IMG/VR virus record: IMGVR_UViG_3300042010_000106
Span: 124,001 to 188,000 of that record
Reading direction: 5' to 3' (one strand)
DNA length: 64,000 nucleotides
Of the stretch, positions 14,196-22,019 are shown one piece after another. The stretch's first letter is position 1. Each line of letters starts with the position of its first letter. Under the pieces are notes generated by a model that searched no databases, was not told the DNA's origin, and saw nothing but the letters and a program-made list of their open reading frames with translations. A program made the translations under genes and the position numbers.

Positions 14196-14639
14196 TTACT
14201 TCAGAATCAGGCGCCGATTGGCACCCTTCACAAACGATATGTGAATGTAGTTGTCACGCATCTGCAAAATGTCGAATTCTTCCGACTGCAAATATTCGTA
14301 AATCATTTCGAGGTCATTGGACACGATAGAAACTGCGTGCCCGGTGACGTGTTGTTTTTGCTGGATGTAATCAAACCAGTTTTTATCGCTGCATGTCAGT
14401 TTGTTCTGACGGCACCAATCGAAGAAACCCGGTTTGCTGTATTCGCGTTCCAGTGTAGGCGAGCGATACCAACTGACGATCCGAAAGTTGTAAGCGTTGC
14501 GCAATGGTTCCAGCACAAACTCTGCCATGTCCTCGGCAGCGCGCAGCACATTGCGGGGCGGCGTATTGTCGATTTTGTTTTTAATCGCAACGAGGTCGAA
14601 ACCCACGTCAAGATCGGTATAGTTTGGACTGATTTTCAT
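14196..14639 (-). CDS. Peptidase M15A-like protein (endolysin candidate; Zn-ligand Asp replaced)
   Basis: IDNTP..VLEPLR..SWYRSP..QHVTGHAVS..YIHISF follows the M15 pattern. Confidence 0.7.
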   Translation of the reverse strand: MKISPNYTDLDVGFDLVAIKNKIDNTPPRNVLRAAEDMAEFVLEPLRNAYNFRIVSWYRSPTLEREYSKPGFFDWCRQNKLTCSDKNWFDYIQQKQHVTGHAVSIVSNDLEMIYEYLQSEEFDILQMRDNYIHISFVKGANRRLILK

Positions 14640-14650
14640 AACGTTTTCCT

Positions 14651-15097
14651 TTACAACGCAAGGCCGATAATGGCAATCGCTTGCCAGAATACTTTTTCAA
14701 TTGCGAACCACGTTTTATCGCGTTCGTGTTCTTGCTGTTCCTTCAGATACAGCGCGTAATTTTCGTTGGCGCGTACCTCCTGTTTCAGCGCAATATCTAC
14801 GACCGTGTTGTGTTGCTGGATCGTTTGATTATGCGCTACCACAAGAAGATTTAAGCCTTCGGTATTTGCTTTCGATTGCCGTACATAATCCGTAAGCTTT
14901 CGCGTGTTATTCAGATCGAGTACGGCAACTTCTTTTCCGTCAACTTGCGCTTGGCTTATCGCTGGTTTGTCCGGCAGGGACGCTTCCAACGTAAGCTTTT
15001 CCAATTTCTGCAATGGCAGTGGCGGTGGTGGATTCCACTGTTGGGACGTTTGACATCCCGGCACCATGAGAATCAACAATAACAGGATTAGCCGCAT
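14651..15097 (-). CDS. Lipoprotein, spanin candidate with hydrophobic C-terminus
   Basis: MRLILLLLILMVPG|C lipobox-like sequence, Pro run, coiled coil, C-term VFWQAIAIIGLAL. Confidence 0.65.
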   Translation of the reverse strand: MRLILLLLILMVPGCQTSQQWNPPPPLPLQKLEKLTLEASLPDKPAISQAQVDGKEVAVLDLNNTRKLTDYVRQSKANTEGLNLLVVAHNQTIQQHNTVVDIALKQEVRANENYALYLKEQQEHERDKTWFAIEKVFWQAIAIIGLAL

Positions 15098-15443
15098 TTT
15101 CTGTACTCGCTTGTAAGCGTTCCAGCGCGGTGCGTACTGCCAATGGCATTGGTGGTTTACCAATCATGGAATCAGCAGCAATACCGATTGCGAAATAAGT
15201 AATCTTTCCCACACCCGGTTCGATGATCACAGTCGTCAGAAACGTTGCGAACGCACCAGCAAAAACCCAAAAGGTAGATTTAACATCGTCGAGCCAATAC
15301 GACGACAGTTTGATTCCCTCTTTCTTGCATTTCCAAATCCAGTTTACGATCACACCTGCAAGGGTGCAAAAGAAAAAACCGAACGCGTCATCGAGGGGAA
15401 TTTCGATGGCTTTTTCAATCGCTTTTACAAACCATTCCATCAT
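14940..15443 (-). CDS. Multi-pass membrane protein, holin candidate
   Basis: 2-3 hydrophobic segments; lysis-like context. Confidence 0.55.
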   Translation of the reverse strand: MMEWFVKAIEKAIEIPLDDAFGFFFCTLAGVIVNWIWKCKKEGIKLSSYWLDDVKSTFWVFAGAFATFLTTVIIEPGVGKITYFAIGIAADSMIGKPPMPLAVRTALERLQASTENAANPVIVDSHGAGMSNVPTVESTTATAIAEIGKAYVGSVPAGQTSDKPSAS

Positions 15444-15453
15444 CGCGCACTCA

Positions 15454-15708
15454 CTATTCTTTGTTGTATTCCTCTATCGCTGCGCTTATTGAAGCCGCAT
15501 CCGACTTCGGAACGGGTTTTGTTTTTTCGACGACGGCTACATGGGCCTCTTCGATTTTCTCGTTCTGCTCTGTGTAATCCGGTGGCAACTCTACTTCTGG
15601 TGCTGGCGGTTGTGGCTTTTCTTTAGTCCGACCTACAGCCGCAAAAAGAGTCAGCAAAAAGATTGCTGCGCCCACAATCCACAAACCCCATTTCTTTAGC
15701 GTTTCCAT
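15454..15708 (-). CDS. N-terminally anchored membrane protein, i-spanin candidate
   Basis: KKWGLWIVGAAIFLLTLFAAVG TM followed by a Pro/charged domain. Confidence 0.55.
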   Translation of the reverse strand: METLKKWGLWIVGAAIFLLTLFAAVGRTKEKPQPPAPEVELPPDYTEQNEKIEEAHVAVVEKTKPVPKSDAASISAAIEEYNKE

Positions 15709-15712
15709 ATAT

Positions 15713-15877
15713 TCACCGTGATGTGAAAGTGTGTTCCAGACCGCGATTCGAACCAACCTTTTCGCCTTCGTCGTCGATGGTGTCTTGACGGTTAAGCATT
15801 TTGCGTCGATTCAATCGCTGCATTTTCGAAATAACTTTCTTGTTTCTCACGGGTTTTGCATCAATCAAAATAAGCAT
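15713..15877 (-). CDS. Small basic protein, 54 aa (not in ORF track)
   Basis: MLILIDAKPVRNKKVISKMQRLNRRKMLNRQDTIDDEGEKVGSNRGLEHTFTSR; GGGGA RBS; downstream of CGTAATTTA. Confidence 0.6.
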   Translation of the reverse strand: MLILIDAKPVRNKKVISKMQRLNRRKMLNRQDTIDDEGEKVGSNRGLEHTFTSR

Positions 15878-15930: not shown

Positions 15931-15961
15931 AAAGAAAAAGGGGAACCAAATGGCTCCCCTT
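15931..15961 (-). terminator. Intrinsic terminator
   Basis: AAGGGGAGCCATTTGGTTCCCCTTTTTCTTTT on the minus strand. Confidence 0.8.
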
Positions 15962-15980
15962 AATCTATACCACTATGTGC

Positions 15981-17111
15981 CTACGTGTTCAGCCAGCTCA
16001 CGCCACCTTTGATTGCCGCAGCAACGCCAAGGGTGATAACCAGTTCATTCACGGTGGTGAATTCAACGTCATCAGGAGTGATTTGTTTGTTGGTTGCAGC
16101 ATCAACGACAATCACGTTCGGCCAGCGATAGCCGAGGTTGTGAGTGATTGTGTGGGTGGTTGCAGAAGCACTGTCGATTGGAAAGAACAGACCAGCAACT
16201 TTCGTGTTCATTTCCGTTTCAGTTGGGTACGTATCCAGCGCAGTAGTCAATGCCGCAGGAGTAACGTAGGTGCCGGAAAGATCGCCAACTTTCAAACCCG
16301 CAGCGGATTTGGTCAGCGTGGCACCGTCCAGTTTAACGGAAACAACATCACCGGCAGTTTCAATACCGTCGCCGGGAGTGATGCCAGAAATGCCGCCGAA
16401 TTCTGCCCAATCAGTACCGTTCCAACGCAGCCACATACCATCAGCACGATCCCAAACGAGGGCGCCGGGGCCTTGTGCAGAAACGTCGTAAGCGAGAACG
16501 GTTGCTTCACCGCCTGCTGTAACTTCTACGATGTCATTTGCATTGCCGACTGTTGGAGTAATACCGCTCAAACCATCAGTCAGAATGTAACGACCTGCAA
16601 CGCCTGCGAAATCAGCTTCGCGACCGAGAACGTCGGCTTGGAAATCCAAACCGGCCAGCGCGTTGTCAATTGCGTTATTCAGTTGGGTAGTGTTTACCAA
16701 ACCGGTAACAGCAGTTGCGATTTCATCAGTTACATCGGTGCTTTGTGCATACGGTGCGAGCGCCGCAGTCAAAGCAGTTGTCAGCACGTACGAACTGAGG
16801 GCGGTTGTCAATTCGCCATCGGTTGTGTAACCGCCCAAAAGGGCAGTCAGTGCGGTGGTTGTGGTGTAATCCGCAAGCGCTGTATCCAGCTCTTCAGGAG
16901 TGACGCCGCCAGCACCAGCAGCGCCGAGGCTAACGGTTGTGGTGCCGTTGTAAAAACGCAGCGTGTCGGTGGTAGTGTTTACCCACAAACGCGGTGCAGT
17001 AAGATCACCGGCAATTGGATCTTCCACCAATTGTTCGATGCGCAAGTTTTTGATTTCGCCAGTCAGGGTAACGTCACCCTTGACTAACAGTGAACCATTA
17101 ATTTCTGCCAT
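15981..17111 (-). CDS. Virion structural/fibre protein
   Basis: Ala/Thr-rich YxTTTALTxAL repeats; C-term HTITHNLG..PNVIVVD module. Confidence 0.7.
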   Translation of the reverse strand: MAEINGSLLVKGDVTLTGEIKNLRIEQLVEDPIAGDLTAPRLWVNTTTDTLRFYNGTTTVSLGAAGAGGVTPEELDTALADYTTTTALTALLGGYTTDGELTTALSSYVLTTALTAALAPYAQSTDVTDEIATAVTGLVNTTQLNNAIDNALAGLDFQADVLGREADFAGVAGRYILTDGLSGITPTVGNANDIVEVTAGGEATVLAYDVSAQGPGALVWDRADGMWLRWNGTDWAEFGGISGITPGDGIETAGDVVSVKLDGATLTKSAAGLKVGDLSGTYVTPAALTTALDTYPTETEMNTKVAGLFFPIDSASATTHTITHNLGYRWPNVIVVDAATNKQITPDDVEFTTVNELVITLGVAAAIKGGVSWLNT

Positions 17112-17134: not shown

Positions 17135-17935
17135 TCATAGTGCTGGTGGGCACGAAATAACATCAACAATATCAACGTATTCCGTGCAGCGTTTCAGAAG
17201 AGACGCCAGCGGTTCGTCACCTTCGATTACGCCAGCAAAGCTAAGCCTGCTGGTCGAATAGTTCTTTATCAACACGGGGAAAGATCCACATGCGATTGTC
17301 AGGTAATATTTTATGCGTTCTTCACACATAAAAATCCCCGACTGGAAATAGTAATCAATGGTAAAATTGTCGATGTAGACAATCAGTCGATCAGCATTGG
17401 AACGATTTGTCGTGCACTGATTCGGAACGTAGTTGCTTCCTAACAGGCAGTCGATTTCGTATAACTCGTACAAGCACATTTGAAGCATTGAACTTAACCC
17501 GGCGACGATTATCGGGAAGGCTTCAAGGGTGTGCATTCCATTTGTACTTTTAATCATGGCTCTGAAAGCATTGCGCGTGTGCACGTTAACCGTATACCAC
17601 TGGTCAACGAAACCCTCACAAAACAGAGTCGGATAAAGCTCAAATATTTCAAGGTGATATGACTGCACCTTGTCGTCATCAGCTAACACCGCGTCAATTG
17701 TTGCTTCTGTCACGGTGCTATTGTTGAGGAAGGTATACTCGACCCGCTGCGCCCAATTCGTGTAGCTATTGAATAAAAGCAGCAGCGTTTCTCTAGCAAC
17801 CTCGCTGAATTGGTTGCGTTCCATCAACAAATCATTGAGGATAAATGCCTTGTTCCCGTAAAAGAGCGACATCGCTTTTGAACTGACGGAACGGAATCGA
17901 ATATTGTTCGGAACGAATGACATGAGTAACCTCAA
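17135..17935 (-). CDS. Hypothetical soluble protein (start may be ATG 17923)
   Basis: ORF track; coupled to the upstream gene. Confidence 0.7.
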   Translation of the reverse strand: MRLLMSFVPNNIRFRSVSSKAMSLFYGNKAFILNDLLMERNQFSEVARETLLLLFNSYTNWAQRVEYTFLNNSTVTEATIDAVLADDDKVQSYHLEIFELYPTLFCEGFVDQWYTVNVHTRNAFRAMIKSTNGMHTLEAFPIIVAGLSSMLQMCLYELYEIDCLLGSNYVPNQCTTNRSNADRLIVYIDNFTIDYYFQSGIFMCEERIKYYLTIACGSFPVLIKNYSTSRLSFAGVIEGDEPLASLLKRCTEYVDIVDVISCPPAL

Positions 17936-18417
17936 ACGCCTCTCGGCGCTTCACCACGGTGCATGTTGAGTCCTAGAATGATACCCGACACTTGGCTTTG
18001 TTTCTCACTGACTTCTGACAATGTGCGCAAAAGCCGCTCAGTGTTTCTGTCAATGGTGTTCATACAGTTCTGAAGTTCACGAACTGTCGTCGAATCCAAA
18101 TGGCGATTACCGTTTAGTGCCCCCGACATTGAATTTAGCAAACTGCGCAATTCTTCTAGGGCAGGAATACTGACGGGGCGTTCAACAATTGCTAAGATTT
18201 CGCTCAGCATTTGGCTCATTTTTTTAAGGTCATCAGTATGTGTTGTGCGAAGCTCCTTTATCTCTTCATCCTTATCCACAATCGTTGCCAGCGCTTCCTT
18301 GAGCTGCGCAGCCTGTGGAATTGCAAACCACCAGATAACAGCGCCGAAGGCTAGCGCCAGCATCATTGCAATAATCGTGGGGATAGGACTGGAGAATATT
18401 GTGTCAATCATCCCCAT
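17932..18417 (-). CDS. Single-TM coiled-coil membrane protein
   Basis: IIAMMLALAFGAVIWWFAI TM followed by heptads. Confidence 0.7.
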   Translation of the reverse strand: MGMIDTIFSSPIPTIIAMMLALAFGAVIWWFAIPQAAQLKEALATIVDKDEEIKELRTTHTDDLKKMSQMLSEILAIVERPVSIPALEELRSLLNSMSGALNGNRHLDSTTVRELQNCMNTIDRNTERLLRTLSEVSEKQSQVSGIILGLNMHRGEAPRGV

Positions 18418-18712
18418 ATTTGCACCTATCGTTTGTTGGAGTGAACTGGTATGTTTTTACGCCATCGTTATTGGTAACGACGATCTTTGTTATCAGGGGT
18501 TTCTGAATTGCGCACGCAAGTCCAGCACCCGGCAGATTTTTGCAAACGGCTTCTACACAATCTACGAATTCTGTCACAACTGGTTTAGGCCCAGCAGAAT
18601 CAAATTCCGTGACCGCCCACGATCCAAACATAATCGCTAGCAGAAGTAGCAGCAGTGCCCTACTCCCTTTTGTTTGTAATGACACGGTAGAAAGTCCCCG
18701 ACAGTTGGTCAT
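18404..18712 (-). CDS. Small exported/membrane-anchored Cys-containing protein
   Basis: ALLLLLLAIMFGSWA hydrophobic segment; four Cys in the mature part. Confidence 0.6.
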   Translation of the reverse strand: MTNCRGLSTVSLQTKGSRALLLLLLAIMFGSWAVTEFDSAGPKPVVTEFVDCVEAVCKNLPGAGLACAIQKPLITKIVVTNNDGVKTYQFTPTNDRCKYGDD

Positions 18713-19421
18713 ATATATCCATACTACCCAACTTTTTCAGTCGCTCTAACGAGGCGCAGATGCTTGTAGATTTTCCACCAGTCAAAACGATTATTGCATC
18801 GTCCGGCGTCGGCCCGATGGCTAATGCTGTGCGGAAATCTTTGTAGCAGATTCCCACGTCCACATGCGTTCTGTTAGCTTCAACCACAATTTCTTCGATG
18901 GCAGGGTAAGAGAGTTTGGCATTCCAATTATCACGTAAGTTAAATACATTGATGATTAGGAAGCCCTTATCTTTTCGTTTCAATTTGATCAGTGCTAAGC
19001 GCAAGTCGTGTTCTGTTTTCATTTCGAACACTTCTGTAACTGTCGTCTGTTCTTTGATCGCTGCCAATCGCTCGGTTTCCAATTCCCCCGTGCCTTGCAA
19101 CACGTACACTTTATCTTTTATGACTTTGTTCAGCGTGAACTGAGACACAATCGAAAAGCGCTTACTGGATTCAATTGGGTAGAGCTGCCCAAGCACCGTA
19201 ACTTCCTTGTATTTCTCTGTTTGGGCATATTGATTTAGGATGTGGGTTACGTCCTTTGGCCGTGCGCGTCGATCCAACATTACCACTTGACTGCTAAGCT
19301 CTTCGGCGAATGTTGTGCCGTAAAGATCAGTAATCACGTGGCTTTGCACAACCAACGTTTCCGCACTGGCAATGCCTATCAGGCTATACAAGTAAATTAA
19401 CGAGGCTAGGATTAATCGCAT
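18660..19421 (-). CDS. Secreted protein resembling an ABC-type periplasmic binding/sensor domain
   Basis: Signal peptide ..IASA|E; TLVVQSH..MLDRR and FLIINVFNLRD..SY..IEEIV patterns. Confidence 0.5.
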   Translation of the reverse strand: MRLILASLIYLYSLIGIASAETLVVQSHVITDLYGTTFAEELSSQVVMLDRRARPKDVTHILNQYAQTEKYKEVTVLGQLYPIESSKRFSIVSQFTLNKVIKDKVYVLQGTGELETERLAAIKEQTTVTEVFEMKTEHDLRLALIKLKRKDKGFLIINVFNLRDNWNAKLSYPAIEEIVVEANRTHVDVGICYKDFRTALAIGPTPDDAIIVLTGGKSTSICASLERLKKLGSMDIYDQLSGTFYRVITNKRE

Positions 19422-19439: not shown

Positions 19440-22019
19440 CTACGGCGTTTGGTCAATAACACCTATGCTAAAGTTTTTAACAGTCCAATCACCGTACCAG
19501 AATACGTTTCCGGTTGAACCACCAATGCGACGACCAATATAGAACGGTGAAGAAACATCGTTCAAAAGGTTTTCGGTGTACGGAGATTCGCCAATTTTAG
19601 TTCCGTTTACAAAGCAGGCCAATACACCAGCGGTTCGGATAAACTTCACCAAATACTGAGTATTGAATGCCAATGCAAACGGGAAAACAACGAACGTTCC
19701 AGCAGTGCCATCATGGGATGCAGAAATCACGAACTGTTGCGCTGTGTGGCTGTATTGGATTTCGTAGTTGACGAGTTTTCCCGGTGCTGCCCACGTGCCC
19801 CAATAAACCATTGGAGTAATTGCGCTGCCAGAAACGGTTGTCGCCGTTTGCACACTGAAATCAACTTCACACACAAAGTCTTTCGAACCCGGACACAATT
19901 CAGGCGCGTTTGGCATTGTCAAATACGCGTTGAATGGCATGCGCCAAGATCCAGCAGAAGCAGAACCGCCAGTTGCTGTAATACCTTTTGCAACCACACC
20001 TTCTTTGATCAAAGATGTAGGAATTGCTTTAACTTTCGGCGGTGCAGCGAGTGGTTTAATCACGCCGTTATACATCGCACGTTTTGCAATTCGAATCCAT
20101 TTGATCGACAGCGGGTTAGTGCTGGCGGTGTAGTTCCAGTTGTTGCGCATTGGAACCGTATCGGTGTTATCCATGAGTGGGAACGTGTGAGCTTGTGTGC
20201 CCACTAATACACCATCCATATAAGCATTCAAAACATTGTTAACTTTCTCAACAACTAGGTGAACGTCTCTGTTTAATGGAACCAGATTCGAACCCAAAGA
20301 CAGAGATTGCAAAGCCGTGCCGCCACTGGCTTGCGATGCGGTATAAATAATCATCCCGCCACCGCTGCTGTACCAGAGCAACCAACTGTTTGGATTTCCG
20401 GGATCTATGTACTGACCCAACACGCAGTTTTCCGCTGTGCCGGGATACGCAGGCAAACGGAATAACAATTCAATTGTGAAATCGCCAGCACCGAAATACT
20501 TACATGGCGCACTGAATCGCGAAGTTGTTGCTGCCGTGGTTTGCAAACGACCATTCGCAACCGAAGTTGGGCCAGCCATAACGATTTGCCGACCGCCCAC
20601 AAAATCCATTTCGTTTAGCAGCGAATTGTTTCGGAATGCAGCTTGGAAAACAATGTCGTCACGTACAGCAGGTTCGTAGTATTGAGGCGTCAACGCAGGC
20701 AATGTAGCCAACGGTTCAAACGCATCCGTGTACGCAGATTTACCGCGACAAATACGCATGCCCCAACGACGACCAATTGCACCGTTACGAATGTTCAAAA
20801 ATTCCGTACTTTTGAACGTCGCGGTGTTGTTTGCCGCCGAATAAATCTGTGCACCGTTGAGGTAAATTTTCAATACACCACTAACACGACACACCGCGAT
20901 ATGGTGATCATTGTTCAGAGTCAAACCAGCGGCGCTTACGTTGATTCGTCCGGTGCTAGAATTCGAACCGTCTGCGTTGACGATTACAAGCACGTTGCCA
21001 ATTTGCGCACCCACAAAGAACGCGAAGTTTGTAGAGCCAGAAGGTGCATACATCGACAACAATGCAGCCGCATCAGGAATTGCAGACATATTCAACCAAC
21101 CTTCGATACTGAAATCTTCGGAGGCTGAAAAGTAAACCGGTGTGGCGCGGTCTAATGGATATCCTGTTGCAGAAGTGTTCACCAATTTGTTGCTGGAAAC
21201 GGTGGCGTTCGTCAGCAACACTGCTGCTTCGGTTACGTCTTCAATCGCTTGGTTATTTTGGAAACTGAATTGCGACCAAACATATGGCGTCATGTCTTCA
21301 GAGGCTGGAATCTCCATTACATTTGCACGCAGTTTATCCGGATTGCTTTGCGGGTACAGCCGCTGGTACGCCCAATCAAATGCACCGTCATTCGCCACAA
21401 TAAAGTTGCCAACGTTGCGATGGTAGTAAAGCTTCGGCATTCCTGTACGCGTAAGGCCGTTGTATTGAACGCTGCCGTTTTCGAAAAAGAATGCGAATTT
21501 GTCACCCGTTGCAGCGATTACAAATGCTGCTGAATATGCAAAGACGTTTTGTGCTACAGTCGATCCGATAAAGGAACCGGAAAGATAACGCGATTTGTTG
21601 TAGACGATGAACGTGCTTGAGCCAATTGCAATCTTGTCATTTGCTGTGACAGCCACACTGAAATTTCGGGTCAGTGTTTGCACCACGCTAATCTGTTGTG
21701 CAGTCACGCTGACGATAACAATTGTGCCATTGCTCGCTACGTCGAACGCGCCAACAATGTCGATTGGGGTTTGTACACCACCGGTCAGGCGATACGTTTT
21801 ATCTACTGTTTGTGCAGCGATTACGGTTCCGTCATTCGACATTTTCAATGCGAGAACGTCAGCCAGCGCATACGTGGTTGGCTGAAGAGTTAGCGTATTG
21901 TTTGCTTCGTCTTTTGCGTAGGTTGAAACCACGCCATTCTGATAGACAGCGACGTGGTTTTTCCCGTGAGCAAGCAAAACGTTTGGCAGCGCGACTGTGT
22001 TTAAAAGTGCCATGCTCAT
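19440..22019 (-). CDS. Tail fibre/receptor-binding protein with about three LamG/ConA-like domains
   Basis: DFSIEGW..HHIAVCR..IYLNG..RICRG; DFTIE..HLVVEK..AYMDG..IRIAK; DFVCE..CFVNG. Confidence 0.8.
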   Translation of the reverse strand: MSMALLNTVALPNVLLAHGKNHVAVYQNGVVSTYAKDEANNTLTLQPTTYALADVLALKMSNDGTVIAAQTVDKTYRLTGGVQTPIDIVGAFDVASNGTIVIVSVTAQQISVVQTLTRNFSVAVTANDKIAIGSSTFIVYNKSRYLSGSFIGSTVAQNVFAYSAAFVIAATGDKFAFFFENGSVQYNGLTRTGMPKLYYHRNVGNFIVANDGAFDWAYQRLYPQSNPDKLRANVMEIPASEDMTPYVWSQFSFQNNQAIEDVTEAAVLLTNATVSSNKLVNTSATGYPLDRATPVYFSASEDFSIEGWLNMSAIPDAAALLSMYAPSGSTNFAFFVGAQIGNVLVIVNADGSNSSTGRINVSAAGLTLNNDHHIAVCRVSGVLKIYLNGAQIYSAANNTATFKSTEFLNIRNGAIGRRWGMRICRGKSAYTDAFEPLATLPALTPQYYEPAVRDDIVFQAAFRNNSLLNEMDFVGGRQIVMAGPTSVANGRLQTTAATTSRFSAPCKYFGAGDFTIELLFRLPAYPGTAENCVLGQYIDPGNPNSWLLWYSSGGGMIIYTASQASGGTALQSLSLGSNLVPLNRDVHLVVEKVNNVLNAYMDGVLVGTQAHTFPLMDNTDTVPMRNNWNYTASTNPLSIKWIRIAKRAMYNGVIKPLAAPPKVKAIPTSLIKEGVVAKGITATGGSASAGSWRMPFNAYLTMPNAPELCPGSKDFVCEVDFSVQTATTVSGSAITPMVYWGTWAAPGKLVNYEIQYSHTAQQFVISASHDGTAGTFVVFPFALAFNTQYLVKFIRTAGVLACFVNGTKIGESPYTENLLNDVSSPFYIGRRIGGSTGNVFWYGDWTVKNFSIGVIDQTP

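Follow-up and report, generated by a model that had tools for sequence, protein, structure and literature searches.

A conserved four-gene module of jumbo phages, predicted to span the host inner membrane and to include an exported protein with a type I periplasmic-binding fold

A set of four adjacent genes, designated P1 to P4, lies in a 64,000-nucleotide stretch of phage DNA (the window), which comprises bases 124,001-188,000 of a viral contig of 312,325 bp that has direct repeats at its termini (IMG/VR record IMGVR_UViG_3300042010_000106). The genes encode an exported protein, two single-pass membrane proteins and a soluble protein, in that order. It is well supported that they form a conserved, phage-specific set whose products together span the host inner membrane and which is inherited as a unit. 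Near-identical DNA is present in several independent rhizosphere and soil metagenomes. In protein-level searches, the phage groups with the Pseudomonas jumbo phages HRDY3, Lu11 and PaBG, and at a greater distance with jumbo phages that infect Erwinia (Y3, Alexandra and the pEa_SNUABM series), Dickeya (the JA phages) and Yersinia (fHe-Yen9-02); a nucleotide search of a phage collection with the window DNA returned no match. A search of a literature library found no paper describing the P1-P4 module.

The order P1-P2-P3-P4, followed by a gene for a virion structural protein, recurs in HRDY3, Lu11, PaBG, Y3, JA29 and fHe-Yen9-02. Remote P1 homologues led to metagenomic contigs with the same order, and P4 led to 21 IMG/VR loci that also keep it. 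Of the 35 distinct loci that were scanned with local profiles, 33 contain both P1 and P4. P2 and P3 were confirmed at every locus of the clade that was checked for them (P2 in 25 of 25 related loci), and the four-gene order persists down to 18-25% identity. An earlier reading of the DNA alone, hereafter the initial annotation, had made its proposal depend on the four genes being conserved together, and this they are, in order, in the 33 loci. P4 is the most conserved member, with 44% identity to its PaBG homologue against 30% for P1. The two exceptions are the Vibrio phage TDDLMA (L034:4534-5771) and the Ralstonia phage RsoM2USA (L035:5001-6311), where a P4-like gene stands beside a P3-like gene. 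The P3-like match is clear in TDDLMA (E 2.5e-8) and borderline in RsoM2USA (E 0.0019); in the latter the order of the two genes is reversed and the pair lies outside the fibre clusters. Searches of both whole genomes found neither P1 nor P2. Since these phages carry the P3/P4-like pair only, P3-P4 looks like the core of the module and P1-P2 like an added periplasmic part.

All four open reading frames recognized in the initial annotation exist, with corrected starts for P2 and P4 (Table 1). P1 and P2 overlap by 26 nucleotides and P2 and P3 by 14, and an 8-nucleotide gap separates P3 from P4. For P2, the listed ATG at 18712 would give 102 residues; a GTG at 18685 stands behind the sequence GGGGA, and in 11 of the 25 related loci the corresponding GTG ranks as the best start candidate. 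For P4, the listed TTG at 17935 (266 residues) is probably wrong, and the ATG at 17923, which stands behind GAGG, yields a protein in agreement with its homologues. The remark that the module uses codons uncommon in the flanking virion genes finds mild support in the codon adaptation index, which is 0.61-0.63 for P1-P4 against a mean of 0.72 for 50 window genes (z -1.6 to -2.0); the virion genes on either side reach 0.75-0.78. This fits a lower level of expression and does not imply foreign origin. Strain variants of the module in independent soil metagenomes differ mainly at third codon positions. In a sister strain from one rhizosphere sample at 40x coverage, P2 and P3 are identical to those of the window, and in the neighbouring 376-residue virion gene there are about 20 substitutions, almost all of them at third positions. 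Because homologues occur in many phages and variants concentrate at third positions, P1-P4 are real, selected genes and not chance reading frames. Searches of Pfam, NCBIfam and PADLOC gave no meaningful match for any of the four.

Table 1. Coordinates of the P1-P4 module and of neighbouring features, as positions in the window
Feature	Position	Strand	Description
P1	18660..19421	-	Exported protein of 253 residues; Sec signal peptide predicted at residues 1-20, mature part about 233 residues, type I periplasmic-binding-protein fold on the model
P2	18404..18685	-	Bitopic protein of 93 residues, GTG start; one transmembrane helix, predicted periplasmic domain of about 60 residues with four cysteines
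P3	17932..18417	-	Bitopic protein of 161 residues; acidic N-terminal tail, transmembrane helix, heptad-rich helical domain
P4	17135..17923	-	Soluble, cysteine-rich protein of 262 residues, ATG start; helical bundle and α/β domain on the model
Upstream neighbour	19440..22019	-	Fibre-like protein of 859 residues; three Laminin_G_3 stretches (PF13385, E 9.8e-25); phrog_13163, baseplate wedge
Downstream neighbour	15981..17111	-	Virion structural protein of 376 residues; phrog_16122, E 9.9e-63
Terminator-like hairpin	15938..15961	-	10-bp stem with 6 G-C pairs, then a T-run; directly after the 376-residue gene
Lysis cassette	14196..15756	-	Single-transmembrane protein of 100 residues, transmembrane protein of 167 residues, lipoprotein and M15-type endolysin of 147 residues; unit separate from the module

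P1 carries a classical Sec-type signal peptide, MRLILASLIYLYSLIGIASA, with the predicted cleavage site before E (...IGIASA/ETL). All the sequence patterns that the initial annotation had quoted for the protein (LVVQSH..LDRR, VYVL, T..DL..AL..L and FNLRD..SY..I) are present, and its proposal of a periplasmic-binding-protein fold of the kind that fronts kinases and cyclases is borne out by structural comparisons against three collections. An AlphaFold2 model built from an alignment of 13 relatives has a predicted local distance difference test (pLDDT) score of 83 and a predicted template-modelling score of 0.81, and is uncertain only in the signal peptide and the last 11 residues. In a Foldseek search of the PDB with this model, CD0873 (6hnj/6hni), 3lft and 3lkv came out on top, followed by ribose-binding and LacI-type domains; LuxP is also among the matches (TMq 0.51). 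Among AlphaFold DB clusters, diguanylate cyclases and histidine kinases match best, through their N-terminal domains. The ESM Atlas search ranked a PF04392 cluster first (template-modelling (TM) score 0.75 over 235 residues), ahead of sensor kinases that bear PF04392. The model shows two α/β lobes joined by a hinge, with structural similarity to binding proteins over the whole domain, and it thus supports the identification of P1 as a shortened type I periplasmic-binding protein resembling PF04392. Sequence-profile searches of the PDB with close and wide P1 alignments, even with a 41-member family profile, recovered no binding protein, and no NCBIfam profile links P1 to any binder; the kinship predicted from the model is at the level of the fold only. 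Among viral models, the P1 fold is restricted to this phage family, besides weak matches to giant viruses.

An exhaustive profile search placed 51 cluster representatives in the P1 family, and all 18 remote members inspected have N-terminal signal peptides; a search for look-alikes of P1 with a language model gave nothing usable. Among 41 representatives, Y34 is invariant and Q26, G78, R118, N158, G190 and G203 are at least 90% conserved. The model places each of them either at the C-terminal end of a β-strand or at the start of the next helix. Type I binding proteins hold their ligands at such strand ends and helix starts, and the conserved residues of P1 thus appear to map to the ligand-binding positions of the fold. 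Only the Lu11/PaBG-like subgroup keeps the Cys192/Cys222 pair without exception.

The annotated P1 homologues of Y3 (L005:4119-5144) and JA29 (L006:4336-5199) begin at the mature domain, without a signal. Their reading frames stay open for 57-83 codons further upstream, where a start with a good ribosome-binding site is followed by a basic N-region and a lipobox-like 'GAC'; the extension overlaps the preceding gene by about 115-130 nucleotides. The homologue in fHe-Yen9-02 is annotated in the long form, with a signal-like N-terminus. The Y3 and JA29 annotations are probably too short, and P1 in the phages of Erwinia, Dickeya and Yersinia may be a lipoprotein. The lipobox-like string of Y3 and JA29 ('FLGACLW') may, however, be fortuitous, because it is the +1 reading of a conserved 'FLEPVSG' motif encoded by the overlapping upstream gene. 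P1 of the window has a type I signal and no lipobox.

The N-terminus of P2 is basic, and the protein contains a single hydrophobic helix and four cysteines. Its alignment shows invariant C43, C48, G55, C58, P63 and C88 (pattern C-x4-C...G-x2-C...P...C), and the N-terminal flank of the helix holds 22 K/R against 2 D/E. From this charge distribution and the invariant cysteines, P2 is predicted to be oriented N-in/C-out, with its C-terminal domain in the periplasm, where it probably forms disulfides. The gene is unannotated in HRDY3 (L001:5200-5524), Lu11 (L002:5170-5492) and Y3 (L005:5172-5492), despite an open reading frame with the invariant cysteines at each locus. P3 matches phrog_28931 (E 1.5e-22) and consists of one N-terminal transmembrane helix (of the ..YWFFVIP type) and a heptad-rich helical region that ends in the strongly conserved motif SDKQSQVxG...RG[VIL]. 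Across 16 sequences, its N-terminal tail holds no K/R and 15 D/E, and the flank beyond the helix is rich in K/R; P3 is for this reason predicted to be oriented N-out/C-in. The conserved 13-residue SSPxP tail would accordingly face the periplasm and the coiled-coil-like helical domain the cytoplasm. Language-model look-alikes of P3 are sub-threshold only. A two-component spanin (Rz/Rz1) was considered for P3/P2 and rejected, as P2 has no lipobox, its first cysteine lying about 15 residues past the transmembrane helix, and P3 has the predicted N-out/C-in orientation. The nearby lysis cassette also carries a lipoprotein candidate of its own.

P4 has no transmembrane helix, contains eight cysteines and is predicted to be cytoplasmic. 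It matches phrog_19088 (E 4.6e-83), and its AlphaFold2 model (pLDDT 90.6) consists of a long helical bundle (residues 8-162) and a small α/β domain (residues 180-257). Foldseek found nothing in the PDB at E <= 0.001, an exhaustive VIA-align search found no significant match, and TM scores in the ESM Atlas did not exceed 0.41; the sole match is one uncharacterized AlphaFold DB cluster (TM 0.77/0.86). Pfam and NCBIfam likewise gave no match, a scan of bacterial genomes for P4 relatives found none, and a language-model search for look-alikes gave nothing usable. Both phrog_19088 and RefSeq label the protein 'ABC transporter'. Its sequence contains neither a Walker A motif (GxxGxGK[ST]) nor LSGGQ, and with profile, motif, transmembrane-helix and ABC-component fold searches all negative, this label is unsupported.

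The initial annotation described the module as a relay with no kinase or cyclase, and this absence extends to the whole 312-kb genome. Searches of the genome found no GGDEF domain, no ABC ATPase (PF00005) and no BPD_transp_2 permease (PF02653), with positive controls detected. The only HATPase_c/GHKL ATPase match is a GyrB/Toprim topoisomerase subunit outside the window (G000:C1:246779-248773). Thus neither the cognate permease and ATPase of an ABC importer nor a kinase or GGDEF output accompanies P1 in this genome.

The fibre-like gene upstream of the module ends 18 nucleotides before P1, in the same operon, and the 376-residue virion gene begins 23 nucleotides past P4; a homologue of the latter follows the module in all six of the named relatives that share its gene order. 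No site comparable to the hairpin behind the 376-residue gene was found within the fibre/module operon, and this terminator-like element would close the operon ahead of the lysis cassette. From this arrangement, P1-P4 are predicted to be made late, on the same transcript as the tail-fibre genes. The module does lie one gene upstream of a lysis-like unit in the window, as initially described, and the cassette is likewise one gene downstream of the module in HRDY3 and Lu11. In PaBG, Y3, JA29 and fHe-Yen9-02, the module instead has fibre-like genes on both sides, and the complete PaBG cassette (two small proteins, a lipoprotein and an endolysin) is about 24 kb away. The fibre-flanked loci and the distant PaBG cassette indicate that the conserved neighbourhood is the adsorption apparatus, not lysis. 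The proposed link to lysis timing thus did not hold up: a hairpin separates the two units and their adjacency is lost in four relatives, so a tie between the module and the adjacent lysis genes is improbable. In PHROG searches, P1-P4 match no lysis family, and no homology to T4 RI, RIII or T was found.

Two further features of these neighbourhoods were recorded. The lipoprotein of the window cassette (phrog_23384; 14651-15163 on the minus strand, with a likely start near 15097) has a lipobox-like sequence (...LMVPGC) and a hydrophobic C-terminal tail (...FWQAIAIIGLAL). This layout is that of a unimolecular spanin, and the gene overlaps the end of the gene for the 167-residue transmembrane protein by about 150 nucleotides. 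The fibre-like genes that flank the module in relatives share a C-terminal domain of about 60 residues, including a gene labelled 'HNH endonuclease' in PaBG (L003:3461-4282), Y3 (L005:3421-4248) and JA29 (L006:3653-4450). The C-terminal domain of the genes so labelled is shared with fibre-like and 'virion structural' proteins (phrog_21918, phrog_16122 and phrog_28944). As these genes sit among fibre genes, the nuclease label looks doubtful.

Signal peptides, charge bias and the distribution of cysteines all agree with the periplasm-to-cytoplasm layout that was originally read from the four proteins. The preferred interpretation, held tentatively and at less than even confidence, is a split transmembrane relay in which P1 with P2 provides the input to a P3-P4 core. 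P1, probably together with P2, would act as the periplasmic input and bind a small molecule or an envelope component in the cleft between its lobes. Its state would pass through the membrane helices of P2 and P3 to the P3-P4 pair, which would act on a cytoplasmic or inner-membrane target late in infection. Such a device would amount to a sensor of the 'binding domain - membrane helix - signalling helix - output' type whose parts sit on four separate polypeptides and whose output is novel. The relay is preferred because it mirrors the architecture of P1-like cellular proteins and fits P1-P2 as an optional input to the core. That such a split sensor lets a lytic jumbo phage tune a late decision (on release, exclusion or entry control, for instance) to extracytoplasmic conditions is a more speculative step, and rather unlikely as it stands.

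Several observations weigh against the relay. No PF04392 or Peripla_BP profile matches P1 or any of 13 family members, even at E 10, and fold searches recognized no output domain in P4. The topologies of P2 and P3 are predictions from charge bias only. The constant place of the module in fibre gene clusters is unexplained by a pure sensing role. The single RNA-labelled sequencing run contained a few short contigs, flagged as probably DNA. Prediction of a four-chain complex, made from custom alignments with P1 as the partner, scored 0.27 against a mark of 0.32, and was counted neither for nor against binding.

An alternative reading is superinfection exclusion or control of entry or of the receptor, tied to the fibre genes; this is possible, and nearly as likely as the relay. 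The module would change or occupy a part of the host envelope late in infection; P1 might, for instance, mimic a host binding protein and dock on a host transporter, sensor or inner-membrane entry factor. Entry of secondary phage DNA would thereby be blocked, or progeny spared from debris, as with T5 Llp, Cor or T4 Imm/Sp. Receptor-blocking genes such as llp and cor are found near fibre genes, and the module always lies within or beside tail-fibre or fibre-like genes. P1 and P2 are predicted to be exported or to face the periplasm, and P1 diverges faster than P4, as expected of a part in contact with the host. The candidate lipoprotein forms of P1 in the Erwinia, Dickeya and Yersinia phages would also fit, but the string on which they depend may arise by chance from the overlapping gene. 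Compared with Llp and Cor, the module shares the linkage to fibre genes, and P1 of the window has a type I signal rather than a lipobox. Moreover, none of the four proteins has homology to a known exclusion protein or defence model, the Llp, Cor and Sp systems are single small proteins without a highly conserved cytoplasmic partner, and the P3-P4 core occurs away from fibre genes in the Vibrio and Ralstonia phages.

The remaining explanations are less probable. Control of lysis timing, with periplasmic P1/P2 and cytoplasmic P4 modulating a holin as T4 RI and RIII act on T, would draw on the resemblance of the periplasm/membrane/cytoplasm layout to RI-T-RIII and on the cassette one gene downstream in the window, HRDY3 and Lu11. 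Look-alikes of P3 also include clusters resembling holins and the Mu releasin (0.82-0.86), which are sub-threshold leads and not evidence. This reading is nevertheless improbable given the strong terminator-like hairpin between the units, the loss of adjacency in four relatives, the remote cassette of PaBG and the lack of any match of P1-P4 to PHROG lysis families. It is very unlikely that P1 is a nutrient-uptake auxiliary that feeds a host ABC importer in the manner of the cyanophage PstS, with P2-P4 as helpers or unrelated genes. The P1 fold is indeed closest to ABC substrate-binding proteins for aromatic amino acids, and the protein is predicted to be exported. However, across hosts P1 occurs strictly together with P2-P4, and it lacks about 60-70 residues relative to cellular binders, to which it has no detectable sequence similarity; its predicted expression with the late fibre genes falls when uptake matters least, and the scan of bacterial genomes, made for P4 relatives, found none. 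Least likely of all is that P1-P4 are virion parts or assembly chaperones of the fibre apparatus, as their place in an operon of fibre and virion genes might suggest. Given their signal peptides and membrane anchors, P1-P3 would not stay in the cytoplasm, the site of tail assembly, and codon adaptation is below that of the flanking virion genes. P1-P4 are also not among 14 virion bands of PaBG, in a survey that was shallow and used a different gene numbering.

Whatever its function, the module is clade-wide among jumbo phages, with isolates on Pseudomonas, Erwinia, Dickeya and Yersinia, and is unannotated or mislabelled in public records. Several relatives of the phage have been cultured, which makes it open to direct deletion and binding tests. 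Small-molecule sensing by phages, as known from arbitrium and VqmA-Phi, relies on cytoplasmic receptors. If the relay is real, a periplasmic binder wired to phage-only partners would represent a different means by which a virus senses its environment.

On the model, the closest structural relatives of P1 are the PF04392 binders of Streptococcus pneumoniae (3lft, with bound L-Trp), Vibrio cholerae (3lkv) and Clostridioides difficile (CD0873; 6hni/6hnj). The mature part of P1 is shorter than these proteins (about 233 residues against about 300), and no sequence profile connects them. The PF04392 domain also heads histidine kinases and diguanylate cyclases, whereas this phage has no fused kinase or cyclase and no ABC permease or ATPase. 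The predicted fold is thus of a known kind; what is new is its phage-only setting, orphaned from transporter and kinase and locked to three phage-only partners, among them P4 with its unrecognized fold. In LuxP-LuxQ, TorT-TorS and ChvE-VirA, a free periplasmic type I binder reports through a membrane protein to a cytoplasmic output. The module differs from these in that its membrane part consists of two single-pass proteins and P4 has neither a kinase nor a known domain; interaction among its proteins is putative. T4 lysis inhibition involves the periplasmic antiholin RI, the holin T and the cytoplasmic RIII. The module resembles this system in placing phage-encoded parts on both sides of the inner membrane, predicted to be made late, and differs from it in having no homology to its components, no conserved linkage to lysis genes and a terminator-like site between the two units. 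T5 Llp, Cor of phi80, N15 and T1, and T4 Sp and Imm are small exported or membrane proteins linked to adsorption genes. Unlike the module, they act as single proteins, have no periplasmic-binding-protein fold and show no homology to P1-P4. The cyanophage PstS is a type II phosphate binder, closely similar to the host gene, that operates with the host's Pst transporter. P1 is likewise a phage-encoded, predicted periplasmic binding protein, but it is of type I, has no cellular sequence relatives among those searched and travels with three partners found only in phages.

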